IMG/VR virus record: IMGVR_UViG_3300023184_004198
Location: 148,615-212,614 of that record
Strand: one strand, 5' to 3'
DNA: 64,000 nt
Shown here piece after piece: positions 25,907-63,050 of this stretch (position 1 is the stretch's first letter; the number at the start of each line of letters is the position of its first letter). The position numbers and the translations under genes are program-made. Under the pieces are notes generated by a model. That model saw nothing but the letters and a program-made list of their open reading frames with translations. It ran no database searches and was not told the DNA's origin.

Positions 25907-26193
25907 GATACTTACTTTTAACCTATTACAAAAAACCCGACGGCAAGATTGACGAAGTCATGGCCGTGGCCAAAAACTTGAAAAAACGCGACATTGCAAC
26001 TTGCAACGTCATACTTGACTTTAAAAAATTAGAAGTGATCAAAGCCAGTATGTCGGGCACAGATGTACCAAAAGATTTTGACCGCATTGCAGGGTATTAC
26101 CATCAACACTATGCTGCCACCATAGAGCGATTGTTCAACGAGAATGGCTACGAAGTTGAAGTCAACAAACCCCAACAAGATGCGGCTGGATGA
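25903..26193 (+). CDS. Hypothetical protein
   Basis: ATGA coupling, MRYLLLTYY. Confidence 0.7.
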   Translation: MRYLLLTYYKKPDGKIDEVMAVAKNLKKRDIATCNVILDFKKLEVIKASMSGTDVPKDFDRIAGYYHQHYAATIERLFNENGYEVEVNKPQQDAAG

Positions 26194-28593: not shown

Positions 28594-29205
28594 ATGCAAA
28601 CAAAGAACATACACGGCACCAACGACAAAGAACTGTTCAAGAATCACGAAGATTATTGGCAGGTCGCTGACAACATTCGTGACATTTACATGAGCGATGG
28701 CAGTCTGACCACGCTGTTGGACTTTGAACGTGTGTTGGACGAGATGGATATTTACGCATTTCGTAACTGGGAAATTGGCGAATTAGTTGCTGGCCCAGAC
28801 ATTGGCAAATACACAGTGGGTGTGACATTTATGTGGCCAGAAAAAATGATGCCTGACCCACGCGGCGGCAAAAGGCTGCTGCCATTTGATTGCAAAGTCA
28901 CATACAAAAAACAAAAGATCAAAATCCCCATCAAAATTGATGATCCATCGGATTACATTCCTGGCACCAAGAAAGCCAAGATTGTTGAGAAGCCTGTGTG
29001 GCTGGTGGAGATTGTCATGCCCAAGCGCCTCATGAGCGAGATCCGTACAGGCTCAATTGAGATGGAAGATCAAGAAATTGACTTGGATGAACTAGACGCA
29101 GCCTACGAGCAGGATCTAGACAAAGAAGACACACAAAGTGATGCAAAGGCACAAAATGCACAACAAAACTTACAACAAGACCTCCAACCCGTCCCGGCTG
29201 CTTGA
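28594..29205 (+). CDS. Hypothetical late protein
   Basis: 203 aa, TAAATA motif upstream. Confidence 0.75.
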   Translation: MQTKNIHGTNDKELFKNHEDYWQVADNIRDIYMSDGSLTTLLDFERVLDEMDIYAFRNWEIGELVAGPDIGKYTVGVTFMWPEKMMPDPRGGKRLLPFDCKVTYKKQKIKIPIKIDDPSDYIPGTKKAKIVEKPVWLVEIVMPKRLMSEIRTGSIEMEDQEIDLDELDAAYEQDLDKEDTQSDAKAQNAQQNLQQDLQPVPAA

Positions 29206-29725
29206 AGGGTTGCAATATCGTGACCTAGAAGGCATGATGAAGCCTACCATTCATGTGGATGAATTTAGTGGCAAAATGGGCGATGATGAGGATATCATTG
29301 TGTTGAGTTTCTTTGTGCGTGACAAACAAGCAGCCAAAGACCTAGTGGCCTGGTTTGAAAAAGGCTATGATTTTGTACTGGATGCTGACCGCAGCCCAGG
29401 TGAAATCAAACCCAGCCGCTATTTGGTGTATGTGGAAATGCGTCGCCGCAGTGCTGCACCACAGTATGTGGCCGAATTGATTAATGATTTAACTACACTC
29501 ACAGAACATGAACCTGAAGATTGGATAATGCGATATAATAATCAAACACAGCCTTGGAGTGAAGAAGCATTTGCAAGCACTGTGCCGCTGACTCCAGATG
29601 AGTATCGTAGAACACACGAATCAGATTTGAATGAGTGGCGCACTGCCGCTGGGTTGCCTGTAAAACAGATTCACGAAACCCGGCCTGACATGCGGGCACT
29701 ACAGGCTGCTGCTGGACTTATCTAA
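29156..29725 (+). CDS. Hypothetical protein
   Basis: ~190 aa; exact start uncertain. Confidence 0.7.
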   Translation: MHNKTYNKTSNPSRLLEGLQYRDLEGMMKPTIHVDEFSGKMGDDEDIIVLSFFVRDKQAAKDLVAWFEKGYDFVLDADRSPGEIKPSRYLVYVEMRRRSAAPQYVAELINDLTTLTEHEPEDWIMRYNNQTQPWSEEAFASTVPLTPDEYRRTHESDLNEWRTAAGLPVKQIHETRPDMRALQAAAGLI

Positions 29726-33680: not shown

Positions 33681-34678
33681 ATCGACTGGTTTATTATCCC
33701 ACAGGCAGTTACGGTACATTTATGCAGTGGCTGTGCAATACTCCCAATATTTCTTCAGCAGAAGATTTACCATTCCATGTTGATGGCAACAGTCATCAAT
33801 ATGTGCTGAGTGATCAATTCAAATTATTAGTGTCAGATCAAGACACTGAAGAATTTGTTTTGACTAAAAATTCTACTGTGGTATCCTGTATTCCTCCAGT
33901 AGACCACAACAGCAAACTTTACAACAAACATGAACAACAAGATTTTTATTACCAGACCACTTTACAACACATAGAATATTTTGATAAACGATTGGTAAAA
34001 ATATTGGTACTTTATCCAACTGAAACTAGTAAAATATGGTGGTGGCATAACAACTGCAAAAAAGTATTTTACACCGAAGAAATGTTTGATAGAAAAATCA
34101 AACATGCTCATCCTGATATCCCTTGGTTGACCACAATAGATCCTGTACAACGTGCTAGGGTGCAAATGAATTATTATCAAAGTCGTGCATGGTATCAAAC
34201 ATTGTTAGAAAATTTTAACTGCGTAAATGCACATCAACTCAGGCCTGGGCAACTGCGCACAGTGATGGCGCAAGCAATACATTACGAAACATTTGACAGT
34301 TTGAGTCATTGGGCGCAATTGCCCCCACAATTGCCCAATGTTAAATTTGTGTCTTTAGATCAACTACGAGATTGCACAAAGCAAACAGTACAAAACATAT
34401 TTGAATATTTCAAAGTGCAATCTAATTTGCCATTGGATTTTGTTTTGGATCAGTGGACTATGCGACAAACAACTCGCAATAGAGACGTCGAACACAGTAA
34501 AATTATAAACTGCATAGTTAACAATCAAACCTGTGATTGGAGCAATTTGAATTTTGATTTGTTTGACGAAGTGTACCTTTATTATGCATTAAAATATCAA
34601 CACAATATCTTATTAGACACAGACAGCATAGATTGTTTGCCAACCAACTCACAGGATCTACTGCGCCTGGCCCGCTAA
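33677..34678 (+). CDS. Hypothetical protein, possible sulfotransferase-like fold (AT-rich)
   Basis: Y.TGSYGTF..W N-terminal loop; TTG start. Confidence 0.55.
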   Translation: MNRLVYYPTGSYGTFMQWLCNTPNISSAEDLPFHVDGNSHQYVLSDQFKLLVSDQDTEEFVLTKNSTVVSCIPPVDHNSKLYNKHEQQDFYYQTTLQHIEYFDKRLVKILVLYPTETSKIWWWHNNCKKVFYTEEMFDRKIKHAHPDIPWLTTIDPVQRARVQMNYYQSRAWYQTLLENFNCVNAHQLRPGQLRTVMAQAIHYETFDSLSHWAQLPPQLPNVKFVSLDQLRDCTKQTVQNIFEYFKVQSNLPLDFVLDQWTMRQTTRNRDVEHSKIINCIVNNQTCDWSNLNFDLFDEVYLYYALKYQHNILLDTDSIDCLPTNSQDLLRLAR

Positions 34679-34686
34679 ATAATCAC

Positions 34687-35145
34687 ATGTGGATTTTACA
34701 CTTCTTACCGGACACACTCATACTTTGGATCTGCAACACGGTGTTGTTGGCAGGCATCTTGCTGACTGTGACAGCATTTTTTATCAAACGCATACCTGTC
34801 ATAAACCAATACCGGATACCCGCACAAGTTCTGGGCATCGCACTGCTGGTGATAGGCGTATACTGGCGCGGTGGCTATGCTATCGAAATGGAATGGCGAG
34901 AACGTGTGGCCGAAGTAGAAGCCAAGGTAGCGGCTGCTGAAGCACAGAGCCGAGAAGCCAACACAAAAATTGTAACCAAAGTTGTTACAAAAACACAGGT
35001 TATACGAACTCGTGGCGAAACTATCACCAAATACATTGACCGGGAAATTGTACAGTATGATACAAAGTTTGCCCCAGGTGGCCAGTGTGAAATACCACAA
35101 GAATTTATCAAAGCACACAACAGTGCAGCAGAGGCACCCAAATGA
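34687..35145 (+). CDS. Rz-like inner-membrane spanin
   Basis: TM segments, coiled coil, IVTKVV...TKYIDRE...C.IP..F...HN.AA. Confidence 0.65.
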   Translation: MWILHFLPDTLILWICNTVLLAGILLTVTAFFIKRIPVINQYRIPAQVLGIALLVIGVYWRGGYAIEMEWRERVAEVEAKVAAAEAQSREANTKIVTKVVTKTQVIRTRGETITKYIDREIVQYDTKFAPGGQCEIPQEFIKAHNSAAEAPK

Positions 35146-35678
35146 AAATTAACGACATTATTACAGAAGCCAAATCGGCACATCCACGACAGGCTGCAAA
35201 AGCCATAGCCATGAGAAATGCGGGCATAAAACCCAAGCACATGGGCGAGAGTGCAGAGTTGGCTGAAGAGTTTGATCTCATTGAATCAATCATTGAACGC
35301 CTGGCCGAACACAACGGTGTGGATTCTGAAGTGATCTGGGAAGATTTAGAAACACTGTCAGAAGATGAACTGTATGTGTTTGCTGTGACATCAGAGCCCA
35401 TCATGGAAAGTGAAGCCTGGCAAAAAGCCAACAACCGTGACAAAACAGATGGCATGAGTCGCAAAGCAGTGAAAACTTATCGCAGAGAACATCCAGGCAG
35501 TAAACTACAAACAGCAGTTACTACCAAGCCTAGTAAACTCAAGCGTGGTAGCAAGGCCAGCAAGCGTAGATCAAGTTATTGCAGTCGCAGTCGTGGACAG
35601 ATGAAGATGCACAGCATTTCGTGTTCCAAGACTCCAGACAAAGCAATATGCAAAGCACGTCGTCGTTGGAACTGCTGA
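35142..35678 (+). CDS. Leader-bearing putative internal head protein with basic Cys C-terminal domain
   Basis: MKINDIITE leader, acidic middle, RRSSYCSRS...KARRRWNC end. Confidence 0.7.
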   Translation: MKINDIITEAKSAHPRQAAKAIAMRNAGIKPKHMGESAELAEEFDLIESIIERLAEHNGVDSEVIWEDLETLSEDELYVFAVTSEPIMESEAWQKANNRDKTDGMSRKAVKTYRREHPGSKLQTAVTTKPSKLKRGSKASKRRSSYCSRSRGQMKMHSISCSKTPDKAICKARRRWNC

Positions 35679-35948: not shown

Positions 35949-36563
35949 ATGGAACTAACAATCGGTCAACTAAAACAAATGGTGCCCGGCATACCCTATG
36001 CTGAACACTGGTATGAAGCATTAGACCAATTATTACCCGACTATGAGATCAACACACCCGAACGCATTGCTGCCTTTATAGCACAGTGCGCACATGAGTC
36101 AGGCGGATTCCGGTTCATCAAAGAAAACTTGAACTACAAAGCAGAAAGTCTGCGTAAAATTTTTAGCAAGTATTTTCCCACAGATGAACTAGCACAGGCC
36201 TATGCTAAAAAGCCTGAAATGATTGCCAACAGAGTTTACGCTAATCGCATGGGCAACGGTGACGAGCACTCCGGTGACGGGTATCGCTACTGCGGACGTG
36301 GGCTGATCCAACTTACTGGCAAAAGCAATTACGAAAACTTTGCTGCCAGTTTGGAAATTTCCCCAGAAGAAGCCGCAGAGTACCTGGGCACATTTGAAGG
36401 TGCCGCACAAAGTGCCTGCTGGTTCTGGGAAAGCAACAACTTGAATGTGGAAGCCGACGCCGGCGACATCAAGAAAATGACCAAGAAGATCAATGGTGGT
36501 TACATTGGTTTGGAAGATCGTATCAAGCACTACGAACACGCATTACACATCATGGGAGCATAA
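35949..36563 (+). CDS. Glycoside hydrolase family 19 endolysin
   Basis: AAFIAQCAHESGGF...ENLNY, NRMGNG, GRGLIQLTG..NY, TK.INGG..GL.DR. Confidence 0.92.
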   Translation: MELTIGQLKQMVPGIPYAEHWYEALDQLLPDYEINTPERIAAFIAQCAHESGGFRFIKENLNYKAESLRKIFSKYFPTDELAQAYAKKPEMIANRVYANRMGNGDEHSGDGYRYCGRGLIQLTGKSNYENFAASLEISPEEAAEYLGTFEGAAQSACWFWESNNLNVEADAGDIKKMTKKINGGYIGLEDRIKHYEHALHIMGA

Positions 36564-39989: not shown

Positions 39990-40775
39990 ATGACCGACTA
40001 CTACGCCACACTGGGCGTCTCTCGAACTGCCACTGCTGACGAAATTAAACGAGCCTTTCGTCGGCTGGCCAGTCAACATCATCCCGATAAAGGTGGCGAC
40101 ACACAGAAGTTTCAGGCCATACAAGCAGCCTACGCTGTGTTAGGCGAAGAGCAGAAACGTGCTGAGTATGACAATCCCAGACCACAGTTTTCGGGATTCA
40201 ACGGCGGTGTAAACATCAATGATATTTTTAACATGTTTGGACAAGGTGGCTTTCCAAGTGGGGGATTTGCACAACAACATCCCAGACGCAGTCATGTAAG
40301 AATGACACTTTGGATTACTTTGTTGGATGTAGCCACTGGTGGTCGACGCACCGTGAGTCTAGGCACACAAGCCGGAGTCAGTGCAGTAGAAATTGACATA
40401 CCCTTGGGCATTAACGACGGCGACAATGTGCAATATGAAGGAATTGGACCTGGTGGCTCAGATCTTGTGGTGCAATTCAAAATAAATCCTGATCGCAAAT
40501 GGCAGAGAGATGGGTTGAACTTGATACAAGAAGTTCGAATTGATATCTGGAATCTAATTCTAGGCGGCGAACTTACCATTGACACTTTAACTGGAAAAAC
40601 ACTCAGCACTCGTGTGCCAGAACGCACACAGCCCGGTACTGTATTACGACTCAAAGCACAAGGCTTGCGGGATCGAGCAGGGCATATAGGAGACATTTTG
40701 ATTCGAATACAGACTTTTTTGCCTGATCAAATTGCACCCGAAATCATTGATGCCATCCAAAAGCACCAAGAATAA
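39990..40775 (+). CDS. DnaJ-class chaperone (CbpA-like, no zinc finger)
   Basis: DYY..LGV...[17 protein letters not shown]-domain, G/F region, C-terminal domain. Confidence 0.92.
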
Positions 40776-40795
40776 ATATTTTGGCACAGCCCAGG

Positions 40796-40824
40796 TTGCA
40801 CCAAATATGAAAATAGCATATAAT
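40796..40824 (+). promoter_or_regulatory. Sigma70-type promoter for clpA
   Basis: TTGCAC-N17-TATAAT. Confidence 0.65.
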
Positions 40825-40851
40825 AACCCATAGGACAACTCAAGGACCCAC

Positions 40852-43107
40852 ATGCAAAATAATCCCGAAATTGAACATATTGTTGAACAAGCAGTGAAAA
40901 TTGCGCGAGACAAACATCATGAATATGTGATCACCGAACACTTGTTGTTGAGCCTGATCAGGCATACACCTTTTCGTAAAACACTGGATCGTTTTGGTGT
41001 AGAAATTACACAAATGGATCAAGAAATTGAGGCCTATCTTGATGGATTGAAACACTTGGTCAAGACTGATGCAGATTTGCAACCACGCAAAACACAGACA
41101 CTAGAACGACTGTTCAATCGTGCCAATGTGCAGGTTATGTTCACTGGTCGTAGAACACTAACAACTTTGGACCTGTACTTGAGCATCATGGCCGAAACCA
41201 ACAGCCATGCACACTACTTCTTGCTGAAATATGGTGTGAAGAAAACTGAATTTGCTGATTTCTACAGCAAAAATTACACAGCCGCCGAAACAGCCCGGAT
41301 GAATACCAATCAGGCCAACGACATTTTGAACGAGTACTGCACCAATTTAACAGCACAGGCACAAGCAGATCAGTTGGAACCACTTATTGGTCGCCAAACC
41401 GAACTGCACGAAATGATCACAGTAATGGCACGACGTTTCAAAGCCAACGTGCTCATGGTGGGTGATCCTGGTGTGGGCAAGACCTGCATTGTGGACGGCC
41501 TTGCACAGGAAATTGTTGCTGGCCGTGTGCCCAAATTCATTCAGGACCACGAAGTATGGGGTTTGGAAATTGGTAGTCTGTTGGCAGGATCAAAGTATCG
41601 TGGTGAATTTGAAGAAAAATTCAAGGCTGTGATTGCTGCCTTGGAAACCAAGAAAAAATGTATCCTGTTTATTGACGAAGCACACACTATGAAAGGTGCT
41701 GGTTCAGGTTCACAAAGCAGTCTAGACTTTGCCAACATGTTGAAACCTGCAATCACCAAAGGCCACTTGAAAGTAATTGCTAGTACAACCTGGGAAGAAT
41801 ACTACGAATCATTTGAAAAGGATCGCGCACTCATGCGTAGATTCTACAGACTCAGCATTGACGAACCCGATCAGGACACCACAGAAAAGATTTTGATTGG
41901 GTTAAGCCCCAGATTGGAAAAATTTCATGACGTCATGATTGACACAGATGCTATCATGGCCTCTGTTGAACTGGCCAATCGATACATTCATGATCGTAAG
42001 AATCCTGACAAAGCCATTGATTTGTTGGATGCGTCATGTGCTAGAGAGCGTGTAAAGGATGCGGGCACAGTCACAGTCACCAAAGAAATGATTCAAGCAC
42101 AAGTAAGCCGTGTGGCAGGTGTACCTGTGGATCGCTTACAGAATGAACGCAGTGCAAAGATTGTGGATCTCGAAAGCAATATCAAGCAGAAGTTGTATGG
42201 ACAAGACTCAGCAGTGGATTCAGTGCTGGAACGTGTGTACATCAACTTTGCTGGTATTGGCAATGCCCGGCGTCCTATTAGCAGTTTCCTGTTCCTAGGC
42301 CCCACAGGTACAGGCAAAACTGAGTTAGCCAAACTGCTCGGCGAACACTTGGAAATGAAACTGTTGCGTTATGACATGAGTGAGTATCAGGAAAAACACA
42401 CAGTGTCAAGCCTGATTGGTGCGCCTCCTGGCTATGTGGGCTTTGAAGATGGCAACGTGGGCGGCGGCAAGTTAATTTCAGACATCAGCAAGAATCCCTA
42501 TGCTATTATCTTGTTTGACGAGATTGAAAAAGCACACAGTGATGTCACCAACATCTTGTTGCAGATGCTGGACGAGGGGCACATTACTAGTGCAAATGGC
42601 AAAAGAGTTGATGTGAAAAACTGTATCATTATTATGACATCAAACTTGGGTGCTCAAGCCAATGACACCAACAACATTGGTTTTGGATCATTGGAGAAGT
42701 CAGGAGAAGAAGACCGTGCAATGAAAGACTTCTTCCGTCCTGAACTGCGCAATCGCATTGACAAGATTTGCAAGTTCAACAAACTGAACACCTTGGCCAT
42801 CAAGAAGATTGTGGTCAAGTTCGTGGACGAACTCAAAGCCAGTATGACACACAAAAACATCAGACTGGTGCTGACTGAACCGGTGATTGACTACTTGGCT
42901 GACAAAGGCTACGACTCCAAGATGGGCGCACGTCCACTGAGTCGTAAGATTGATGAACTGATTCGTGTGCCACTGAGTAAGAAGATCCTGTTTGATCGAC
43001 TGGAAAATTGCACCATCACTGCTGTGATGACTGAAGATACAGTAGAGTTCAACATTGAGCAAGATGCTGTGACCATTGTGAACTCTGAGGGGATTATTAT
43101 TGTATAA
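40852..43107 (+). CDS. clpA: ATP-dependent Clp protease ATP-binding subunit, ClpA-like
   Basis: N-domain EHLLL; GDPGVGKT and GPTGTGKT Walker A; GAPPGYVG; IGF loop; no ClpB middle domain. Confidence 0.9.
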   Translation: MQNNPEIEHIVEQAVKIARDKHHEYVITEHLLLSLIRHTPFRKTLDRFGVEITQMDQEIEAYLDGLKHLVKTDADLQPRKTQTLERLFNRANVQVMFTGRRTLTTLDLYLSIMAETNSHAHYFLLKYGVKKTEFADFYSKNYTAAETARMNTNQANDILNEYCTNLTAQAQADQLEPLIGRQTELHEMITVMARRFKANVLMVGDPGVGKTCIVDGLAQEIVAGRVPKFIQDHEVWGLEIGSLLAGSKYRGEFEEKFKAVIAALETKKKCILFIDEAHTMKGAGSGSQSSLDFANMLKPAITKGHLKVIASTTWEEYYESFEKDRALMRRFYRLSIDEPDQDTTEKILIGLSPRLEKFHDVMIDTDAIMASVELANRYIHDRKNPDKAIDLLDASCARERVKDAGTVTVTKEMIQAQVSRVAGVPVDRLQNERSAKIVDLESNIKQKLYGQDSAVDSVLERVYINFAGIGNARRPISSFLFLGPTGTGKTELAKLLGEHLEMKLLRYDMSEYQEKHTVSSLIGAPPGYVGFEDGNVGGGKLISDISKNPYAIILFDEIEKAHSDVTNILLQMLDEGHITSANGKRVDVKNCIIIMTSNLGAQANDTNNIGFGSLEKSGEEDRAMKDFFRPELRNRIDKICKFNKLNTLAIKKIVVKFVDELKASMTHKNIRLVLTEPVIDYLADKGYDSKMGARPLSRKIDELIRVPLSKKILFDRLENCTITAVMTEDTVEFNIEQDAVTIVNSEGIIIV

Positions 43108-43804: not shown

Positions 43805-43969
43805 ATGGCTAAAATACACGAAGAAGTAGTTGTGATCAAACTCTCAAAATTGGTCAAAGATACCGATGCTGGCAGCGAAATTGCTACCACAGACATCGTT
43901 GCTGCCTTGCAATCAGTGGCTGAAGAGCTGGTAGGTGCAGGTGTTGTTGTAGAAGCGGACAAAGCCTAA
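43805..43969 (+). CDS. Small hypothetical protein (54 aa, not in ORF track)
   Basis: MAKIHEEVVVIKLSKLVKD...; TAAATA-N7-ATG; TAATG coupling to next gene. Confidence 0.7.
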   Translation: MAKIHEEVVVIKLSKLVKDTDAGSEIATTDIVAALQSVAEELVGAGVVVEADKA

Positions 43970-44331
43970 TGACCACAAAGACCATTCTTGCGACCACTGA
44001 GTATGGTGTGCCTTCGGGCAACTATGATGGGTCAAGTCAAGACTGGTCAAGTGATCCTGTCACTGCTGCCAACTACTATCGCGGACGCGGTGGCGTGCAG
44101 ACTATTACGTTCTCAGTCACAGATTTTGAAGGCGACATGTACCTTGATGCTTGTTTGGACGAAAATCCTGCTGAAGCCAATTGGTTTAACACATACATTT
44201 ATGGCGACGGAAGTACCATCCCACTCACTGACTATCATCCTGCTACCATCACTGGCAACTTTACATGGATGCGAGTGCGTGTTGAAGGGTTTTCAGGCGG
44301 CACTATCAACTCAGTTACTATCACTTACTAA
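43969..44331 (+). CDS. Hypothetical beta-rich (virion) protein
   Basis: 120 aa; GNFTWMRV. Confidence 0.7.
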   Translation: MTTKTILATTEYGVPSGNYDGSSQDWSSDPVTAANYYRGRGGVQTITFSVTDFEGDMYLDACLDENPAEANWFNTYIYGDGSTIPLTDYHPATITGNFTWMRVRVEGFSGGTINSVTITY

Positions 44332-47142: not shown

Positions 47143-50100
47143 ATGAACATCAACGAACTAGACTCCTATAATCTTGCAGACGCAGTAAAATTTCACCGCC
47201 GTCTCAATCCCAGAATCTGGGGGCGAGACGAGCACTTGCTGCCTGAAGTGCGTGAAAAATTACTGGCCATTGCTGCGGATTTTCAAGAATTCCTGGGCGT
47301 GGATGATCTCAACGTTCAAGACATCACTATATCAGGCTCAAATGCAGCCTATTCATATACAAAAAATTCAGACATTGACCTGCATCTTGTGGTTGAGATG
47401 CCTGATGATCCTGTGTATCAGGAACTGTTCAACGCTAAAAAATATCAATACAACGACGAGCACAATATAAAGATTGGTGGTGCGGATGTAGAGTTATATG
47501 TACAGCCTAGTGATCAAGCACATCACAGCCAAGGCATTTATTCAATTCAAGACAACCAATGGTTGCAGGTACCTCAACGCAAACGTGCTCAAATAGATGA
47601 TGCGTGTGTGCGTGACAAGGTTGCAGACCTGGATGCCAGAATTCACGCTGCCGTCAAAAGCAAAAATATCGACGCTGTGACCACATTGTGGAACAAGATC
47701 AAAACCATGCGTCAAGCGGGACTCGAACAACATGGTGAGTTTGGCTGTGAAAACATTGCTTTCAAAATGTTGCGCAACAGCGGCTGCATTGGTGCGTTGA
47801 AAGATGCTAAAACAGCACTGCAAGATCGTGAACTCAGTCTGCATGAAGAGCCACGAAAGAGATTTCGTTATGGGTATGGTTCGACAATGGTTGAAGCATC
47901 TACTCCTGATGGAGTCAGTCCTACCACTCAAATGTTTTTGAATGAAGATGACGAGATTGAAACCAAAGTACGTGACTTCATCCAACATGTGACCACAGAA
48001 CTGGGTATTGACCCCATGCCAGAAATTCACTTGCACACTGATCCCGAATGGAGTGTACACAATCACAGTTTTGGTCGTTACGACCCTGACAGTCATACTT
48101 TGAATGTCAGCATGCCCAACCGCCACATCCTGGATGTGTTGCGTACAGTGGCACATGAACTGGTGCATTGCAGTCAAAACCAACAACATGGGCACTTGCC
48201 CGACGATGCAGGTGAAACTGGCAGTCGCTGGGAAAATGATGCCAATGCTCGTGCAGGTATCATCATGCGCGACTGGGCCAACGCACACCCAGAAGATTTT
48301 GAACAAGCACCCTTGGCAGAAAATGCTTCGGGCTATATTCCCAAGAACAAACGAGAAGCAGCCCGGCCACAGTATGCCATGGCACTGAGTGTGGATATCA
48401 AACCTGGGCAGGTGGGCAAAGAAGCCAACAAGTTGGCATTGAAAACTGGACGCAATGGTGAGCCAGGCTTGCTACAACCTGATGCACAAAACTTGTTGCG
48501 TGAGTTTGCAGAATTCGCAGAAGAACAAGAAAACTTGTTTGAAATAACCATGAGCCCCTCAAGTCTGCGCAAATTGAGTGCGCAAACTGGTGCCTTGGCC
48601 GGCATGGAATTTGAAATGTGTGTGCCCAACGTCGAAGGCAACGACGACGGTGATCAAGAACCTGACTATGACTATGATGAACGCTGCCGTAGCATTGAAG
48701 ATGCTGTGCAATTTTTCTATGATGGTGATTGGAACGGTCGTAGAGACGTAGAACGCATGCGTGAAAGAATGCAGAGTGATTTCAGTGATTGGCTGATGGA
48801 CAAGGTCTATCAAGACTGGGAACGCCATGGCGAGGAATATCTGGAAGAATGGGTGCCCAACAACGTGGACGAATCTGAGTGGAATCCTGAAGGCCTGGAA
48901 GGTGAGGCTCGTCAAGAAGCACTAGAAGAATACATCGCTGCTATGCATGCCGATGCCGGCAGCAGTGGTGATGCGTTTGATGAGTACAGAGAAGAAAATC
49001 AAGAGTCATATGACGAAAGTGACTGGTTGGATGACGAAGACCTAGACCGCATGAGTAGTATTGAAAATGCCTACTCAATGAACTGGCCGCACTGGACCAA
49101 CCCCGGCCGTGGCGAAACCAGCATTGAAGATATTGCTGACAGTTTTAGAGACGCAGTGGGCCGCCCAATACTAGCCAGCACCAGTTATCACAGCAGCCGA
49201 GTTGAACGACCCAGCACCAAAAACTTGGAATACATTGTAGAACCTGACAGCAGTATTGATGTTGATGACAACGACGATCGAGGCCTGGAGTTTGTAAGCC
49301 CGCCCTTGCCTATAGAAGAACTGCTGAGTGATTTGAACAAGGTCAAAGCCTGGGCTGATCGTACTGGTTGTTATACCAACGATTCAACCGGCCTGCATAT
49401 CAACGTGTCAGTACCTGGCTGGTCCGGCGACCTCAGTCAATTGGACTATGTAAAACTGGCCCTGTTGCTGGGCGATGAGCATGTGTTGGAATCTTTTGGA
49501 CGTGCTGGCAATACCTATTGCAAGTCAGCCATGGGCAAGATACAAAAAGCAGTGAAACAAAATCCTGACAAGGCAGAAGAACTGTTGGAACGCATGCGAC
49601 AGGGCATGGATCAACTGGCCAGCAAGGCCATACACTCAGGCGTCACAGACAAATACACATCAATCAACCCCAAAAATGGCTACATTGAATTCCGTTCACC
49701 CGGGGGCGATTGGTTGAATGATAACTTCAAAGAAATCGACAACACCCTGCGTAGATTCACAGTGGCCCTGAGTGCAGCCGTGGATCCTAAAGCGTATCGC
49801 CAAGAATATCTAAAGAAACTGTACAAATTGTTGGATGTTCACAGTGAAAAAGATCCCTTATCATACTTTGCAAAATTTGCCGCAGGCGAGTTGCCCAAGG
49901 CAGCACTGAAAAGTTTTGTGCGTCAAGCACAGTTAGAACGTGGTGTCAAGCGTGGCAAAGAAACAGGCCCAATGTGGTGGCGGGTGTACAAAGAAGGCAA
50001 AAATGCTGCCAACGGTGCCGTAATCGAAGTTGTGGCTTCTAGCCGAGAAGAAGCATTAGACAAAGCCGCCGAAGAATGGGGTGTGTTTAGCAACGAATAC

Positions 50101-52059
50101 CGACGTGCCATGTATGCCGAACCTGTACGTCCTTATGACGGAGTTGATACCAGCAGAGAGTATGAATTTTACGACCGACGGTCTGGTGCAGTGGTAGCCA
50201 CATTCCGTGCCAGTGATGATGATGCAGCCATAGCAAAACTGGATCAGTTCCGCGCAGCCCAAGTGCGAACACAGGGAATAACAGTGCCTCAAGCCAATGA
50301 GATATACGGTGTTCGTTCATCAGGAGTGGTCACTGCGCCGCCCAGAGATAGACCATCCACTGCTCCTATTCCAGGAAGCACCTTGGATCTACAACGTCAA
50401 CGACTGGCACAGGCACAATCGGGCGGCAACTGGGGTATTCTAATCACATCAAATGGTCGATTTGTTCGCATGTCTGGCACAGGTGATCCAACTGATAGAG
50501 CCCTGCGCAGATTTCCAAGTCGTGAGGCTGCTGAAGAATTTCTAGCACAAACTCGTGCAGAAAATCCCAACATGAGAACTGACATTGAGATTCGTGAGAT
50601 TCCTGCAGATTATCAATCACCCGGCCAACCTGCAGCAGCAATTCCCACCATTGACATTGATGTTGAACCTGCACCAGCACCACAGCCAGCGGGCATGGGA
50701 CAATGGAACGGACAATGGCGGGTCTTGGTTGGCGGTCAAGAAGTATACCGTTTTGGTGGTGTGGGCAACAGTCAAGCAGACGCCAATAGAATAGCAGCCG
50801 CTTGGTTGCGTGACAACGGACAAGGTGTATCTGGCGAAGGCTTTGAAGTATATCCGGTGATGAACGAAAGTTTGACTGAATCCAATCAACTGCAATTAAA
50901 AGATTTTGTGGTTACAATAAGTCCACATGCCCTGAGCCAAGCATATAACAAGGGTGTGGATGTTGACATTGTAGATGACATTTTGCGCAACATCAGTACA
51001 GTCAAAGATCGTATCATGAGCCTAGAACCTGGCAGAGCCCTGATCCTTCACAACGGACAAGGTACTGGCTTAGGCGTTCGTCGACAACAAGGCAACCGAT
51101 TGACCTTGGCCACAGTGTTTCCCACCAGTCCAGGATTTACTAAAGGCAAACATCCAACTTTTCGAGTTGAAGCAAACACTGTAGATGAAGGTGTAACGTC
51201 TGCCATGGATGCTGACCAAGTATTACACTATGTAAAAAAAACACATGGCGCCGACAAATTCAACATTGAATACAGCATAACTGATCATCCCCAGTGGGAA
51301 TTAAAAAATATTCCGTTGTCACAGTTGCACTTGGATCCTGATGGTGAACAACAGGATCCTTACAATAGAACCAACTGGGTTGACTACGATGTTGTGCGTG
51401 ATTTGATACCTAAGATCAAAAGCGTTCTGAAAAATACACCTATTGTGGTAGACGCCGACGGTTGGATCATTGACGGAAATCATCGTGCCATGGCAGCACT
51501 AGATGCAGGATTAACAAGTGTGCCTGCACTTGTACCTGTTATAGTTAAAGAAGATCTGACAGAAGCCAAAACAACCCGAGAAGATTTTGAGGGTATGACC
51601 ATTGAGATGATTAAAAATGGTCATGTATTAGTGATCAATGCGATTGATGATTGGGGCAATAATATCCTGGGTTCTGTTGCTTTCAATATTGGTGATGACA
51701 ATGATTTAGATCCACAAGACTTAAAGGTCGATGAAAGATATCAAGGTCAAGGTATTGCTCGAGTCATGTATGATTATGCAAAAAGCAAGGGCTACGAGAT
51801 TCATCGTAGTTATGACCAAACTGATGCCGGTCGAGGCTTTTGGGACAAGCATCGCGGAGCGGATGTGCGTGTATGGGAAAACTTTGCGGATGGCAAGAAT
51901 CCCGGACGCAAGGGTTTGAGCAAGCGTGTAGGAGTCAACACCAAAGCGTCAGTGAGTGATTTACGTAAGACTGCTAAAAATTCATCAGGTGAGAAACAAC
52001 GCATGGCCCACTGGCTGGCCAACATGAAAGCCGGCAGAGCCAAGGCCAAGAAGAAATGA
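47143..52059 (+). CDS. 1638-aa polyvalent protein: Pol-beta NTase, zincin peptidase, amidoligase, ParB-like, GNAT and basic modules
   Basis: GSNA.Y...SDIDLH; AHELVH; GMEFE...LEFVSPPL...TGLHIN...IEFRS; IDGNHRA; YQGQGIARVMY. Confidence 0.85.
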   Translation: MNINELDSYNLADAVKFHRRLNPRIWGRDEHLLPEVREKLLAIAADFQEFLGVDDLNVQDITISGSNAAYSYTKNSDIDLHLVVEMPDDPVYQELFNAKKYQYNDEHNIKIGGADVELYVQPSDQAHHSQGIYSIQDNQWLQVPQRKRAQIDDACVRDKVADLDARIHAAVKSKNIDAVTTLWNKIKTMRQAGLEQHGEFGCENIAFKMLRNSGCIGALKDAKTALQDRELSLHEEPRKRFRYGYGSTMVEASTPDGVSPTTQMFLNEDDEIETKVRDFIQHVTTELGIDPMPEIHLHTDPEWSVHNHSFGRYDPDSHTLNVSMPNRHILDVLRTVAHELVHCSQNQQHGHLPDDAGETGSRWENDANARAGIIMRDWANAHPEDFEQAPLAENASGYIPKNKREAARPQYAMALSVDIKPGQVGKEANKLALKTGRNGEPGLLQPDAQNLLREFAEFAEEQENLFEITMSPSSLRKLSAQTGALAGMEFEMCVPNVEGNDDGDQEPDYDYDERCRSIEDAVQFFYDGDWNGRRDVERMRERMQSDFSDWLMDKVYQDWERHGEEYLEEWVPNNVDESEWNPEGLEGEARQEALEEYIAAMHADAGSSGDAFDEYREENQESYDESDWLDDEDLDRMSSIENAYSMNWPHWTNPGRGETSIEDIADSFRDAVGRPILASTSYHSSRVERPSTKNLEYIVEPDSSIDVDDNDDRGLEFVSPPLPIEELLSDLNKVKAWADRTGCYTNDSTGLHINVSVPGWSGDLSQLDYVKLALLLGDEHVLESFGRAGNTYCKSAMGKIQKAVKQNPDKAEELLERMRQGMDQLASKAIHSGVTDKYTSINPKNGYIEFRSPGGDWLNDNFKEIDNTLRRFTVALSAAVDPKAYRQEYLKKLYKLLDVHSEKDPLSYFAKFAAGELPKAALKSFVRQAQLERGVKRGKETGPMWWRVYKEGKNAANGAVIEVVASSREEALDKAAEEWGVFSNEYRRAMYAEPVRPYDGVDTSREYEFYDRRSGAVVATFRASDDDAAIAKLDQFRAAQVRTQGITVPQANEIYGVRSSGVVTAPPRDRPSTAPIPGSTLDLQRQRLAQAQSGGNWGILITSNGRFVRMSGTGDPTDRALRRFPSREAAEEFLAQTRAENPNMRTDIEIREIPADYQSPGQPAAAIPTIDIDVEPAPAPQPAGMGQWNGQWRVLVGGQEVYRFGGVGNSQADANRIAAAWLRDNGQGVSGEGFEVYPVMNESLTESNQLQLKDFVVTISPHALSQAYNKGVDVDIVDDILRNISTVKDRIMSLEPGRALILHNGQGTGLGVRRQQGNRLTLATVFPTSPGFTKGKHPTFRVEANTVDEGVTSAMDADQVLHYVKKTHGADKFNIEYSITDHPQWELKNIPLSQLHLDPDGEQQDPYNRTNWVDYDVVRDLIPKIKSVLKNTPIVVDADGWIIDGNHRAMAALDAGLTSVPALVPVIVKEDLTEAKTTREDFEGMTIEMIKNGHVLVINAIDDWGNNILGSVAFNIGDDNDLDPQDLKVDERYQGQGIARVMYDYAKSKGYEIHRSYDQTDAGRGFWDKHRGADVRVWENFADGKNPGRKGLSKRVGVNTKASVSDLRKTAKNSSGEKQRMAHWLANMKAGRAKAKKK

Positions 52060-53602: not shown

Positions 53603-53956
53603 ATGAAGTACAGAGAAATTCTTGAAGCCTGCTGGACTGGTTATCGCCAAGCAGGCATGAAAAACAAAGGTGGTCGCCAGGTGCCCAATTGTGTACCAGT
53701 GCATGAAGCTGAACTGGAAGAAAATCTCCGTGACTGGTTCAAAGAAAAATGGGTGCGTTTTGGGCCTGATGGCAAAATTCGCGGCGATTGTGCCAGAGGA
53801 TCAGAATCGGAGGGCAAGCCCAAGTGTTTGCCCCAGGCCAAAGCACATGCCTTGGGCAAAAAAGGTCGTGCAAGTGCAGCGGCTCGCAAGCGCAGAGAAG
53901 ATCCCAACCCCAACCGTACAGGAAAGGCCATCAACGTGGCCACTAAAAAGAAATGA
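53603..53956 (+). CDS. Leader-bearing protein made of two basic Cys micro-domains
   Basis: MKYREILE|ACW.GY...VPNCVP; LEE|NLRDWFKEKWV...C...KPKCLP. Confidence 0.75.
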   Translation: MKYREILEACWTGYRQAGMKNKGGRQVPNCVPVHEAELEENLRDWFKEKWVRFGPDGKIRGDCARGSESEGKPKCLPQAKAHALGKKGRASAAARKRREDPNPNRTGKAINVATKKK

Positions 53957-55464
53957 TCATAGACGAACTATTTGAAGCCCCACAACAGTGTCCCGAATGC
54001 GGTGGCATCAGTTTCTCAGACTTGATCTTGGCTGAAAAGAAAGACGCCTGCTACTACAAAGTCAAAGCGTCAGCCAAAGTATGGCCGTCGGCGTATGCGT
54101 CAGGACGCTTGGTACAGTGCCGCAAAAAAGGTGCTGCCAACTATGGCAACAAGTCGGAAGGTGTGGCGGAAGTATACAATGCAATTACTGGTGCATTACT
54201 AGCATACGATGAGCATGAAAAAAACAAGGGTGTGGCGGAAGGCTCCGGCAACGTTGGCAATGCTATTAAATCTTTATACCAAAAGATCTATGCTGCTGGC
54301 GACGATGAAATAGAATATTTCTACAACGACAGTCCCATTTTTGCACAATACTGGGACGAATACGAAGGTGATCTAAACTCAATCATTGCCGAAGTTGATC
54401 CCGGCGAATTACAAGTAATGCTAGACGAATTAGAATCCTATGCTCAACAGGCAGGGTTGGCGGAAGAACAAGAGTTAGACGAAAAGTGGAGCCAAAAATA
54501 CAAGAGTTCAATCAACTGTGCCAACCCCAAGGGCTTCTCACAAAAGGCACACTGTGCTGGTCGTAAGAAAAATGAATCAATAGCAGAAGCACCACTACCT
54601 GGACAACGTCGTGACCCATTGGATCTTCAACCGTTGGAAGGTGGGTCAGCCGGTGGAGGATCTCTTGGCAGCGGCATTGGCCCACGTCCTGTTGAGCCTT
54701 TGCCTAAGTGGACTCCAACACGAATACCCGGAGTTGATGTTCACACTGGTCCACCTCCTGTGGTAACAAAACCCCCAAACATCAATTCAAAAATAGATCC
54801 AGCTGCAGAAGTACCTGCTTATGTAAGACAAGGTAAACCAGATCCTGTTACTACACCTGTTGGCAAACCCAAAATTCAAATCAAGCCTGGCGAGACCATG
54901 GATCAGGCCATACAACGCACCCGGGCCGAACAAGAATTCAGCAATTTTCTCAAGGGCCAAGGCGGTCAGTCATTTGGCACTGCAGGTGGCGGGCGTGGAG
55001 GTCAAGGTGGGCCAACAGCCTCTCAAGCAACATCTGGCTCTGACCAAGTACCAACAATAAGACTTCCCGGTGGGAAATTAAGCGTGGATCCCGATCGTTT
55101 GTCTCCAAGTGGCAATTATAAAACACCGGCAACATCATCAGATCATGTCGGGGACAAAGAAGCCTATAATGCAGCCTTGAAGATACGAAAAGATCAGTGG
55201 AATCAACTGAAGACTGGCAAAGAAAAAGAAGGCGAGAAACGTCGAAGTGCATGGAAAAATCCCGAAACTGACGTAGACCTAGAAGAAACACGTAAAAAAC
55301 GTGAGCAGCCTGAAGCCAACTACGACGACGAATACGATGCCATGGTTGCTAGAGTTAAAAAATTAGCCGGATTGGGTCCCATGAAAACTGTGTATGATCC
55401 CAACAAGCGACAATATCGCAACATGCCCACAGCAGTACAACCCAAAGTACAGCCTAAAAAATGA
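53953..55464 (+). CDS. Leader-bearing modular polyprotein
   Basis: MIIDELFE; modules bounded by LAE, GVAE, GVAE, GLAE, LDE, IAE, LEE. Confidence 0.8.
   Translation: MIIDELFEAPQQCPECGGISFSDLILAEKKDACYYKVKASAKVWPSAYASGRLVQCRKKGAANYGNKSEGVAEVYNAITGALLAYDEHEKNKGVAEGSGNVGNAIKSLYQKIYAAGDDEIEYFYNDSPIFAQYWDEYEGDLNSIIAEVDPGELQVMLDELESYAQQAGLAEEQELDEKWSQKYKSSINCANPKGFSQKAHCAGRKKNESIAEAPLPGQRRDPLDLQPLEGGSAGGGSLGSGIGPRPVEPLPKWTPTRIPGVDVHTGPPPVVTKPPNINSKIDPAAEVPAYVRQGKPDPVTTPVGKPKIQIKPGETMDQAIQRTRAEQEFSNFLKGQGGQSFGTAGGGRGGQGGPTASQATSGSDQVPTIRLPGGKLSVDPDRLSPSGNYKTPATSSDHVGDKEAYNAALKIRKDQWNQLKTGKEKEGEKRRSAWKNPETDVDLEETRKKREQPEANYDDEYDAMVARVKKLAGLGPMKTVYDPNKRQYRNMPTAVQPKVQPKK
54160..54240 (+). repeat. Direct repeat GGTGTGGCGGAA(G) encoding GVAE
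   Basis: Copies at 54160-54171 and 54229-54240; variant GGGTTGGCGGAA at 54454-54465. Confidence 0.85.
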
Positions 55465-59803: not shown

Positions 59804-60876
59804 CTGATTACAAACTGCTGTAGTTCTTGAGTCTTTTCTTGTTCAAATTCATACAGTCTGTTGTGATTGTGATCCAGTTTAGGCCGTAGTTTTTGCAATA
59901 GTGCTGGCAAGTCTTGATTGCACAACCACTCAACTTGTTCAAATGCACCACTCCAACGACGTACATCATCTATCTCAGTGTCATACGTTTCGTCTATGAC
60001 ATCACCAAAGGTTTCAAATCCCCAGTCCCGGTATTGCTGTAAGAAGTTTTGTATGGCAAACACCACAAACAGTCTACGAGCTTGAAAACACTTGGCAGTT
60101 TTTTCAGCAGACAAAAAAATACGATCCTTGCCCAGGGTTTCACATACCACACTGAACCAAGAGCGATTGTAAATTTCCCAAGGCACTAGACCACTCACAG
60201 AGTTGTCCATGTCTTTTTTGACTTCCCACTCAGGATTTAAATGCGGACTCACATAGGGATATTGTAAAGTAGTGTTGTTGAATAACTTGGCCACACGTTC
60301 AGGCGTCGAATCAATCCAGTGTCCCACAAACAAGTCTCTGTAGGTCACAATACCACGATCCAGCAAGTCTGATTGTTGCATGTTCAACATCACAAAATCT
60401 CTGTGCTCACGCCTAGCACCCAGCAAACATTCAAATGCATAAGGACGTTGTAGTGGAAAATCTTCACGTGGTTGATTCCAACGCAGGAAATTGAAACTCC
60501 AGGCTGGTCTGTAAATTACTCGTGGATCAGCAGGTTCATCTAGCCACACACCTGCTGTGTGCAACAACCAGTTTTCTACACCTGTGGTTTCAATCCACGC
60601 AATGAGTTCTTTTTTACTGTGCCACTCAATGTCTGTGAACAACACTAAATCAAATTGGTGCAAGGGCAACTGCATGAATTGTTCATTGTATTCATGCTTG
60701 TTGGGCAGGCTGTAAAACACAGGCATCACTGCTATCTTATGAGGTTGTGTCAATGCAGTATCCATGTCCACAATCTGATCGTAACCAAAGCCCCATTCAG
60801 TGGCCTGATAGCCTGGAGAAAATACTTTAAGAGAGGCGTGCAAGTCGTTCACGTATCTTGTCCATGTAGTAATCAA
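59791..60876 (-). CDS. Putative GT-B glycosyltransferase
   Basis: FSVVCET...FLSAEKT.K....R.F...GFETF...IDE.YD; start may be GTG 60852. Confidence 0.6.
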   Translation of the reverse strand: MITTWTRYVNDLHASLKVFSPGYQATEWGFGYDQIVDMDTALTQPHKIAVMPVFYSLPNKHEYNEQFMQLPLHQFDLVLFTDIEWHSKKELIAWIETTGVENWLLHTAGVWLDEPADPRVIYRPAWSFNFLRWNQPREDFPLQRPYAFECLLGARREHRDFVMLNMQQSDLLDRGIVTYRDLFVGHWIDSTPERVAKLFNNTTLQYPYVSPHLNPEWEVKKDMDNSVSGLVPWEIYNRSWFSVVCETLGKDRIFLSAEKTAKCFQARRLFVVFAIQNFLQQYRDWGFETFGDVIDETYDTEIDDVRRWSGAFEQVEWLCNQDLPALLQKLRPKLDHNHNRLYEFEQEKTQELQQFVISHLK

Positions 60877-61711
60877 ATCGTACCACTTCTTGTTTGTCCC
60901 AGTCCATTTGCAAACTGAATCTTAGATCTGGCACAGCATCACACACAGCAGTGTGATAGTCAGGATCAAAGTCGCCAATGGCTTCCATGTTGTCGTAGTG
61001 ATATCTGCGTTGGAACTCCATGGTTATGGGTCTGCGACTCATGGTCCAGTTGCCAATGAATTCGTACTCTGAGAACCAGCGTATGAGTTCACCATTGCCC
61101 CAGGGTGGTACAGTTGGCTCAGGTGGACATGAATCAATCATGGCATCCAGCCATTTCTTTTGATGTCGCTCCTCTAAGAATTTTACTAAATCATTAAAGT
61201 CTTGTTTGAGCACAGGCACGTTTTCTGAAATAAAGCAGTGTGGAGTGAGTCGTTCAAAGCCCAGGCCGTTCTTGATACTTTCATAATAACCCCAACTGTG
61301 GCGTTCATTTTCCAACACTTGGAAATTCAACACACCATCTTTCATGGGCTCGTAAGGTTTAATCAGCAAACAATCACAGTCGTGCATGATCATCAAGTCA
61401 TAGTTGAGATAGTCTAGAAAAGCAAACTTGATGGCTTGTTGTCGCAACCAGTATGTTCTGTAGTCACCATCGAACACCCAGTTGTTGACTTCGGGATAGA
61501 TACGATATATTTCACTATCAGGTGCATAGTCTAGTTTGGAGGTATCAATGCCATACTTTTCAAACACTGGCCACAGTTCTTCTTTGGGCACCGGGCTGGC
61601 AATACAGGTGCGATCAATGCCAATGAGATTGTTGGCAAACTCAGGTTGAAGGCTCATGATGGCATGTGGCACACGATATCGTGCTAGGTATAAAATTCTT
61701 GCTGAAGTCAT
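60827..61711 (-). CDS. DUF6492-like putative glycosyltransferase
   Basis: WLRQQAIK, DCD, FSEYE..GNW; AAGGA RBS. Confidence 0.6.
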   Translation of the reverse strand: MTSARILYLARYRVPHAIMSLQPEFANNLIGIDRTCIASPVPKEELWPVFEKYGIDTSKLDYAPDSEIYRIYPEVNNWVFDGDYRTYWLRQQAIKFAFLDYLNYDLMIMHDCDCLLIKPYEPMKDGVLNFQVLENERHSWGYYESIKNGLGFERLTPHCFISENVPVLKQDFNDLVKFLEERHQKKWLDAMIDSCPPEPTVPPWGNGELIRWFSEYEFIGNWTMSRRPITMEFQRRYHYDNMEAIGDFDPDYHTAVCDAVPDLRFSLQMDWDKQEVVRFDYYMDKIRERLARLS

Positions 61712-61718
61712 ACGTTCC

Positions 61719-62708
61719 TTAGGTAATTGAGCAACTGTTGACACATTGATACAGCCTGCCGTCAGCAATGCTGCTTCTGGACCAGGTCTGTTCCACACGA
61801 TCAAACCACTCCAAGCAATGCGCCAAATCATATTTAAGTGCGTTGTTTTCTTGCACCAATTCTTTTGTCTGTGAATTGCCAGCATGATTCATAGTGTCAG
61901 GATAAAAACCCAGGTAACAACAAGGATATACTGAACCGTCAGCGGCTAGGTATATTTCCTTTTTGAGCTTGTGTTGACAACGTAGTTTTAACTCTGGTGT
62001 GTCTTTGTGCGACTGTACAGTGTGCGGATCAAACCATGTGATGTGACTTTGTAATAGGTCTTTTATGAGTGGCACATGTCCGCTGGGGTCTGTGCCAATC
62101 CTGTGACTGTATTCTCCTGACCTAGTGAACACTGGTCCAGAATCTCTGCCATCGTAGATGTTTTCAAACGCCGCAAATCCCATGTCCTGGGCCAGTTGTT
62201 GACATTGTTGTTCTTGATGCCTGTTATGATCAAACGGAACAAAACGCCATACTGCACGGCCACCTGCGCCAATAAACGCCTGTGCATTGGCTGTGACTCG
62301 GTTCCAATCAGTGTCTTGTCTGTACAAGGCATGAGTATCTGCCAGTCCATCCAAGGCAAATCCCACTGTAACTCCAGGCAAGGCCAGTCTGCGCCACCAG
62401 TCTTGATTGCGTAAACTACCATTGGTGTTGATGTTTATTTTGATACTGTGCGCAACAAGGTACTCGACTATTTCCACAGCGTCACGAGCACTTGCAAAGT
62501 CTCCCAGGTTGCCGTTGAAATTGGCATGTGTTAATTGTGAAATTACGGGACCGACAATGTGTTGAAATTGTGCCAAACTCAGTTCTACATCAGGGTAACC
62601 AGAGTTGTAGTCCATGCCACGATAGTTGCGCATGCACATAGGGCAGCGAGCATTGCACCGGGTAGTGAGTTCCACGTGCACCTGGCGTATTTGATCTAAC
62701 TTTAGCAT
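61719..62708 (-). CDS. Radical SAM protein with Twitch/SPASM-like C-terminus
   Basis: [27 protein letters not shown]; TATAAATA-N4-ATG. Confidence 0.88.
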
Positions 62709-62712
62709 GGGA

Positions 62713-62740
62713 TATTTATAGGCTGCTATTTTGCTAAATA
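62713..62740. promoter_or_regulatory. Divergent pair of late-type promoters
   Basis: TATAAATA on - (62713-62720) and TAAATA on + (62735-62740), each 4 nt from an ATG. Confidence 0.65.
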
Positions 62741-62744
62741 CAAT

Positions 62745-63050
62745 ATGCAAACACATTTTGTCCGAGTTGAATGCGATGTCACAGCCAAGGTACATGGTCA
62801 GCCACTGCGTTACCGAGCTTATGTAAACAATGAACTGTTTGTTGAACGCACCTGGATCTGGACTGACTGCTATTTGGAAGAGTCATTTCAAATCCAAGCC
62901 GGACCGGGAGTGTATCCCATACGATTTGAAACTGTGGACGAAGCCAATGGTCGCATCAAAGTGCGCAATCACAGAATTGTAACAGGCCCAGGCAGAATAA
63001 TAGAGTATCAAGGCGAACCAAGTTTGGAGATATCAGATGCAAGTACGTGA
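62745..63050 (+). CDS. Hypothetical protein
   Basis: YR.YVN.ELF.ERTWIW; 101 aa. Confidence 0.7.

Follow-up and report, generated by a model that had tools for sequence, protein, structure and literature searches.

Here, we report a gene for a 1,638-amino-acid (aa) polyvalent protein of an uncultured jumbo myovirus, together with a short code that recurs at the junctions between its modules. The gene lies at 47143..52059 (+) of the window, by which we mean the whole stretch analyzed (64,000 nucleotides; positions 148,615 to 212,614 of IMG/VR record IMGVR_UViG_3300023184_004198, the final 64 kb of JGI contig Ga0214919_10000027, which has 212,614 bp). As judged from sequence comparison, the code marks the boundaries of exchangeable modules, is position specific, and is conserved across thousands of relatives. 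The protein has an invariant N-terminal core (nucleotidyltransferase [NTase], zincin, basic module, and amidoligase with four small units), a hypervariable cargo, and an invariant basic tail of 59 residues. The reading that we favor, and hold tentatively, is that the junction code encodes proteolytic processing by a prohead protease of the T4 gp21 type, followed by injection. The open reading frame (ORF) starts with ATG, as in a first-pass annotation of this DNA, and the same product (100% identical) was found on three independent assemblies (one JGI; two ENA, ERZ27247968 and ERZ3460575), which rules out both an assembly chimera and a read-through artifact.

Module boundaries were set blind to the motif, as the internal starts and ends of BLAST homology among 66 non-redundant family members. 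[LIVM]-x-E lay within ±5 aa of these breakpoints in 209 of 697 contexts, against 105 expected (z = 11), and in 106 of 390, against 58.7 expected (z = 6.7), once breakpoints had been collapsed to junction types; the modal offset of the Glu from the breakpoint was 0. The control motif [LIVM]-x-[QKSAR] was flat and [LIVM]-x-D was depleted. [SAG]-x-E, the phiKZ-type motif, was likewise flat and was rejected as the junction motif. Junction Glu (P1) with a hydrophobic residue at P3 was followed by a small P1' residue (S/G/N/A/T) in 77% of cases, compared with 20% for other junction Glu, 23% off junction, and approximately 30 to 40% for Asp, Gln, and Lys. Because the preferences at P3, P1, and P1' are coupled, we write the code as [LIVM]-x-E, then [SGNA]. 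An exhaustive search with the tail only returned 1,932 clusters at 50% identity, in which the tail is 82 to 98% identical and nearly always at the extreme C terminus. Among 131 distinct contexts, [LIVM]-x-E stood immediately N-terminal to the tail in 110 (84%), against approximately 20% expected from the frequency of L/I/V/M; P1 was Glu in 130 of the 131, and P2 was unconstrained.

The parse of the protein on which the positions below rely is as follows.

47143..47847 (+), module 1, aa 1-235: Pol-beta-type nucleotidyltransferase plus helical domain, ending L233-H-E235.
47848..48321 (+), module 2, aa 236-393: disordered linker (236-269), then zincin-like metallopeptidase (270-390), ending L391-A-E393, then N.
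48322..48543 (+), module 3, aa 394-467: highly conserved basic segment with invariant ASGYIP, ending L465-F-E467, then I.
48544..49962 (+), module 4, aa 468-940: COOH-NH2 amidoligase (glutamine-synthetase-like) interrupted by an acidic helical insert of approximately 165 aa (approximately 495-658).
49963..50868 (+), aa 941-1242: four small alpha/beta units, from AlphaFold2 (AF2) secondary structure, joined by motif-free disordered linkers.
50860..50880 (+), double junction MNE-SLTE-S (E1242, E1246): where the variable cargo meets the conserved core.
50881..51189 (+), cargo cassette C, aa 1247-1349: small alpha+beta domain (function unknown), ending V1347-D-E1349, then G.
51190..51564 (+), cargo cassette D, aa 1350-1474: ParB/sulfiredoxin (Srx)-like domain with DGNHR, ending L1472-T-E1474, then A.
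51565..51879 (+), cargo cassette G, aa 1475-1579: GNAT acetyltransferase, ending V1577-W-E1579, then N.
51880..52056 (+), cassette A (tail), aa 1580-1638: conserved basic helical C terminus beginning NFADGKNPGRKG, with a predicted local distance difference test (pLDDT) score of approximately 90.

The first-pass annotation placed [LIVM]-x-E at every junction of this chain. Unfolded sequence was defined independently, as AF2 segments with pLDDT of <50 (31% of the protein), and within it 15 of 30 Glu had L/I/V/M at P3, whereas in the folded parts 13 of 93 did (Fisher p = 1.2e-4). The bias holds although hydrophobic residues are rarer in low-pLDDT segments, and none of the controls ([SAG]-x-E, [KRH]-x-E, [LIVM]-x-D, [LIVM]-x-[KR], and others) was biased toward those segments. 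The motif is present in seven of nine inter-domain linkers. It is absent from the border between the amidoligase and the small units and from the borders between those units, which agrees with the parse in the first-pass annotation itself. Across relatives, the sites at 233, 391, 465, 1240, 1244, 1472, and 1577 are conserved, and so is 1347 in its role of cassette boundary.

Hydrophobic-x-E is a common combination (about one per 60 residues), and the pattern might reflect nothing but copies that fell in linkers by chance and were picked out at the first pass. The total in the whole protein is indeed at expectation (28 observed versus 25.2 ± 4.3 in shuffles), and three of the sites first listed (249, MVE; 266, LNE; 1468, VKE) are not conserved and are probably incidental. 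Chance has the placement statistics, the matched controls, and the occupancy before the tail in diverse contexts against it; it is effectively refuted, and we give it a negligible probability.

The family shares one layout: a conserved core (1 to approximately 945), a variable zone of units, a conserved last unit (1176-1242), a hypervariable cargo (approximately 1245-1575), and the conserved tail. In relatives, site 233 reads L-R/H-E, then A; site 391 reads L-x-E, then S/N/G; site 465 reads LFE, then I; and site 1577 reads [VI]-x-E, then N. Site 1240 is M-x-E, then S, in 65 of 65 relatives with a variable P2, and at least five unrelated cargo modules follow it. The motif at site 391 survives the insertion of a module of approximately 60 aa at the junction of the zincin and the basic module (P0028, P0033, P0038, P0042, and other relatives). 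This inserted module itself ends in hydrophobic-x-E, before an invariant ASGYIPKN.

Cutting the cargo of 54 proteins at the motif yielded recurrent cassettes of tight length in 40 architectures: the tail at 57 to 60 aa, C at 103 to 105 aa (n = 17), D (ParB/Srx) at 116 to 125 aa (n = 14), F at 211 aa, and G (GNAT) at 105 to 113 aa (n = 5). Both orders of a pair occur (D-F and F-D, B-C and C-B), and the protein reported here reads C-D-G-tail. Full-length reciprocal matches made up 58% of homologous cargo segment pairs, compared with 5 to 16% for most control motifs (33% for one) and 2 to 4% for random cuts. The same test on whole proteins was uninformative and was replaced by this cargo-only version: any motif conserved in the core yields co-terminal segments, and one control did equally well.

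Pfam families found in the cargo of relatives were GH19, LysM, GNAT, deaminase, NUDIX, NTase, and ParB. LysM plus GH19 cargo is present in 15 of 65 relatives and has the same GH19 fold as the stand-alone endolysin of the phage; since the phage already has a separate GH19 endolysin, such cargo fits a virion-borne, entry-associated protein. In three relatives (P0125, P0130, and P0136), a different module, located internally, likewise begins with the tail-start residues NFADGKNP (it reads NFADGKNPVK...) and has V-A-E before it, and some relatives carry two tail copies in one protein. The P' side of the tail junction may be part of what is recognized.

Most of the domain calls of the first-pass annotation (NTase, zincin, amidoligase with an acidic insert, ParB/Srx, GNAT, and basic tail) hold up. 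The NTase matched phrog_36119 (residues 10-233, E = 2.5e-42), whose members are annotated as nucleotidyltransferases, and its catalytic signature (G65-S66...D77-x-D79) is nearly invariant; Pfam NTP_transf_2 scored just under its gathering score (18 versus 21), and the ANT(9)/AadA fold match was weak. Stand-alone homologues in cyanophages, Maribacter phages, and Lak phages span 1/11-233, stopping at residue 233. At the extreme N terminus, I3-N-E5 is 98% conserved.

All 64 aligned relatives keep H338, E339, H342, and E364 of the zincin (HELVH, 338-342) unchanged. Its assignment is supported by superposition of the AF2 model on viral IrrE- and SprT-like proteins: Foldseek against a viral structure library matched stand-alone viral IrrE-like proteins (E = 3e-7; root mean square deviation, 1.7 Å; TMt, 0.61; a second match at TMt 0.82) as well as viral SprT-like proteins, and an atlas search gave a lead from the zincin to Peptidase_M78. 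Pfam matches, including those to the metallopeptidase (MPTase) families of polyvalent proteins, were below threshold, and neither a sequence-profile search of the PDB nor Foldseek with the multidomain model against it returned a match. Module 3 gave no family or atlas match; its conservation (0.89 to 0.94) is among the highest in the protein, and its pLDDT is low.

The amidoligase matched PF12224 (Amidoligase_2; E = 1.8e-9, 38.3 bits versus a gathering score of 22) and phrog_33777, with glutamine synthetase fold matches and viral amidoligase matches that include Atu_ph07. Its first strand, with invariant GMEFEM (487-492), is split from the rest of the domain (659-857) by the acidic helical insert, which had been put at approximately 200 aa and is smaller than that. 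The four small repeats described at the first pass are present as alpha/beta units in the AF2 model and are visible there only; BLAST self-comparison found no sequence similarity among them. The last (1189-1242) is conserved and ends M1240-N-E1242, then S; pLDDT is <50 at 1241-1249, across the double junction.

Within the cargo, cassette C had no Pfam match and was assigned to no family. The ParB/Srx-like cassette matched a ParB-like PHROG (E = 1.3e-7) and the ParB/Srx fold (Foldseek probability, 1.00; E = 6e-3), with Pfam ParB_N at 16.2 bits, under its gathering score of 26.3. The GNAT module, subthreshold in the whole-protein scan, passed when scanned alone (PF13508, 28.0 bits versus 27; PF00583, 22.9 versus 20.7).

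We infer processing by a protease because the code is short, position specific, and independent of fold: Glu is obligatory, P3 is hydrophobic, P1' is small, and P2 is free. On this sequence evidence, the chain is probably cut at the code. The junction code would then be a processing site, and a single translation product would be cut after Glu into approximately seven products (1-235, 236-393, 394-1242, 1247-1349, 1350-1474, 1475-1579, and 1580-1638). The NTase (which ends at 233), the IrrE-like zincin, and the amidoligase are also found as stand-alone phage genes, so that modules of the core can function apart.

The same code could instead belong to one intact multienzyme chain that is never cut, with [LIVM]-x-E-[small] as a structural or evolutionary linker signature (a domain-end cap, or a junction that cassette recombination can tolerate). 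Many effectors, polyvalent and multidomain alike, work uncut, the conserved arms around the cargo (unit 4 and the tail) could drive cassette exchange through homologous recombination, and copies of the motif occur inside folded domains too. Capping specific to a fold fails as an explanation, because unrelated folds (the helical NTase end, the zincin, the beta-strand of unit 4, ParB, and GNAT) share one coupled three-position code at their ends, P2 being free. Asp does not replace Glu, with [LIVM]xD depleted at junctions, and this reading offers no mechanism for a requirement of Glu over Asp across unrelated folds. An element of 3 to 4 residues is also too short for guiding recombination, and the core modules that occur as free-standing phage genes likewise speak against an obligate single chain. 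We therefore regard an uncut chain as unlikely.

If the chain is cut, the most likely enzyme would be a T4 gp21-type serine protease of head maturation that is specific for Glu and acts within the prohead, with the released enzymes entering the cell together with DNA. The prohead proteases of T4, phiKZ, and SPN3US cut after Glu in a three-residue motif, with Ser favored at P1' (PMC5694885, PMC10052503). Such a protease is favored here because T4 gp21 and the phiKZ, 201phi2-1, and SPN3US enzymes share cutting after Glu in such a motif, and by that analogy it is a possible cutting agent.

The embedded IrrE/SprT-like zincin (aa 270-390) might cut the junction code itself, in cis or in trans and before or after delivery, which would make a prohead protease unnecessary. 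Its invariant catalytic residues, its fold match to M78/IrrE-type (site-specific) and SprT-type peptidases, and its place in the never-exchanged core, with motif sites on both flanks, are all in keeping with self-processing, as is the failure to find a gp21-type protease nearby. P1-Glu with a hydrophobic P3 and a small P1' is, on the other hand, the documented signature of T4-type prohead serine proteases; zincins, to our knowledge, do not typically have such P1-Glu specificity and usually select on P1'. No Pfam family of polyvalent-protein MPTases reached threshold, and the zincin could equally be an effector against a host protein. IrrE/ImmA-type enzymes cleave repressors. The functions that the first-pass annotation gave to single modules, such as a zincin attacking host targets, are speculation, and this zincin may instead be the processing enzyme. 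In the polyvalent-protein literature, zincin MPTases are named the hub, with release of the other domains predicted, and a zincin-like metallopeptidase is the hub domain in about 36% of polyvalent proteins (PMC5512222). Self-processing by the zincin is the main rival to the prohead protease, but on balance we judge it improbable.

Several observations weigh against processing by a prohead protease and injection. The sequences compared are phylogenetically related and p-values are thus inflated, so that the argument rests on effect sizes, matched controls, and diversity of context. The AF2 models are moderate (mean pLDDT, 63 to 65), some low-pLDDT stretches are intradomain loops, and several conserved [LIVM]xE sites (575, 594, 698, and 724) fall within folded domains. 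A MuF or portal fusion domain, the typical mark of phage polyvalent proteins, was not found in the 1,638-aa protein in Pfam and PHROG scans. The gene adjoins DnaJ, a ClpA-like ATPase, and unknowns, with no recognized head module; the window plus approximately 26 kb upstream (approximately 90 kb of the 212.6-kb contig) yielded no gene for a gp21-type protease, a portal, or a capsid protein. The syntenic locus of Pseudomonas jumbo phage PA5oct carries an unrelated tail-fiber protein. Cutting of the chain, its packaging in the virion, and injection of the enzymes are inferred. Weak matches to virion structural proteins at 43969-44331 and 28594-29725 were the sole hints of a virion link.

Among known systems, the closest in kind are the polyvalent proteins, a concept of Iyer, Burroughs, Anand, de Souza, and Aravind (2017), whose domains were proposed to be released by proteolysis and delivered with DNA (PMC5512222). 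The likeness drawn at the first pass fits their account in domain set and in rapidly varying architecture. Like them, the protein is a large single phage polypeptide with disparate enzymes, an embedded zincin-like peptidase, and extreme architectural mosaicism among orthologues (here, the 40 cargo architectures among 54 proteins), and NTase, GNAT, ParB-like, peptidoglycan hydrolase, deaminase, and NUDIX domains all belong to their repertoire. It differs in having no MuF, portal, or other virion-anchoring domain; in a core with Amidoligase_2 (the word "amidoligase" is absent from PMC5512222); in a zincin that is IrrE/SprT-like by fold and subthreshold for every Pfam MPTase family; and in the fixed core/cargo/tail layout of its family with an explicit junction code.

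T4 Alt is a head-packaged, injected effector that gp21 cuts at ITE-6 and LTE-619, removing 63 C-terminal residues (PMC5694885, PMC9958956). The protein reported here resembles it in the conserved INE-5, in multiple [LIVM]-x-E sites, and in the 59-residue piece that follows VWE-1579, and it resembles gp21 substrates in L/I-x-E sites within low-pLDDT linkers, a conformity at the sequence level only. Alt, in contrast, is one enzyme trimmed at its ends, whereas this protein is a chain of enzymes without sequence homology to Alt. Its tail is far more conserved than a typical propeptide and, as a lead only, may also exist as a free-standing small gene. For the gp21 orthologue itself (Peptidase S77/U9), the same approximately 90 kb held two ClpP paralogues only.

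The gp175/gp245-type proteases of phiKZ, 201phi2-1, and SPN3US, which are likewise jumbo phages, cut many internal head proteins after Glu in a three-residue motif and prefer Ser at P1'. At P3 they take a small residue (A/S/G-x-E), whereas P3 in the present family is hydrophobic, and their cuts mostly remove propeptides without separating enzymes. To the polyproteins that RNA viruses of eukaryotes make, the analogy is operational only (one product, a protease that is either embedded or a partner, and junction motifs that are short and conserved): here, the virus is a double-stranded DNA (dsDNA) phage, no domains are common to both, and the modules are accessory effectors instead of replication or capsid machinery.

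Tail-fiber and virion structural proteins are also encoded in the window, as are a clamp loader of the T4 gp44 type, an Rz-like spanin alongside a GH19 endolysin, and a pair of DnaJ and ClpA-like proteins. Megablast of the window against 50,697 phage records found no near-identical relative. The closest cultured relative is PA5oct, with 56% identity in the clamp loader, 39% in the ClpA-like protein, and local gene order in common; homologues of the 1,638-aa protein number at least 1,493, on contigs of up to 365 kb (Ga0620987_00202 has 364.5 kb). The gene comes from a jumbo myovirus that is uncultured and distantly related to PA5oct. Just 5' of the polyvalent gene, at 39990-43107 (+), lie DnaJ and a two-ring ClpA/ClpB-like ATPase, in an order kept in a 364-kb relative and in PA5oct. 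Walking upstream of the window in three hops (approximately 26 kb) met only accessory genes, an SLT/LysM protein, and the two ClpP paralogues, which lie approximately 16 to 20 kb upstream (L010:11762-12352 and L010:14703-15275). Together, DnaJ, the ClpA/ClpB-like ATPase, and the two ClpP paralogues look like a phage-borne Clp chaperone-protease system.

Synteny with PA5oct was considered as virion evidence and set aside. The DnaJ-ClpA pair is common to both phages, but the next large virion protein in PA5oct, gp184, is an unrelated tail-fiber repeat protein, and two 144-aa neighbors compared at that locus are unrelated; hence, the PA5oct virion proteome is uninformative for the polyvalent gene. 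The PA5oct "head maturation protease" gp212 (L008:44349-45020), detected in virions by mass spectrometry, was rejected as a gp21 candidate, being of the ClpP family by sequence, no gp21 orthologue, and without a homologue in the window.

A 925-aa ORF at 10384-13161 (−), which adjoins tail-fiber genes, had a weak "major head protein" PHROG match and was discarded as a capsid candidate, being no recognizable capsid protein. A Hint/intein-like domain (PF05203) spans its aa 638-737, it has a Gly-rich region, and its C-terminal 107 aa share 79% identity with a protein found in the Roseobacter phages CRP-13 and CRP-345. This C terminus may be an exchanged receptor-binding tip and a clue to the host; the family probably infects Proteobacteria of fresh water or the sea.

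The Rz-like spanin and the stand-alone GH19 (chitinase-fold) endolysin are at 34633-35145 and 35949-36563 (+). Three ORFs at 35142-35678, 53603-53956, and 53953-55464 (+) match different parts of the phrog_727 and phrog_3477 profiles (function unknown) and could be a dispersed or split gene family around the polyvalent locus. A run of auxiliary genes (+) at 3672-4460, 4856-5431, 6990-7397, 8419-8637, 9271-9819, and 10067-10387 carries the labels NAD synthase, Hydrolase_2-type cell-wall hydrolase, WYL_2, eIF-1a-like, Sod_Fe_C-like, and Fe-S biosynthesis protein (precomputed Pfam annotations from the identical ENA contig). Radical-SAM genes at 26144-27118 (+) and 60827-62795 (−) flank the region, with PIG-L and DUF6492 genes 3' of the polyvalent gene. 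Conservation of all these genes in relatives suggests a modification pathway.

Our literature searches found no paper on this family, its junction code, or any amidoligase-containing polyvalent protein. The idea of processed polyvalent proteins is in print already; the novelty lies in the particular junction code and in how the cassettes behave. More speculatively, and with considerable doubt on our part, the family may practice a plug-and-play delivery of effectors, in which the core and tail anchors bracket a slot for any cassette ending in the code, one Glu-specific protease frees the cassettes, and the tail serves as a signal for packaging/ejection or for protease recruitment. If so, dsDNA phages would have an equivalent of the RNA-virus polyproteins, and its readable cleavage grammar would allow effector boundaries to be predicted straight from metagenomes.

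Polyvalent proteins are thought to be a major route by which phages and plasmids deliver anti-defense and takeover enzymes, and their cutting has so far been conjecture. This family offers a statistically supported junction code, explicit predicted cut sites, and a large natural library of shuffled cassettes. Were the code a cleavage signal, the processing hypothesis would be directly testable at defined residues, and effector boundaries would be readable from sequence in uncultured jumbo phages. Unknown cassettes (B, C, F, L, and others) would be flagged as candidate host-takeover or counter-defense modules, and the T4 Alt paradigm would be widened from trimming the ends of one enzyme to separating a chain of enzymes.

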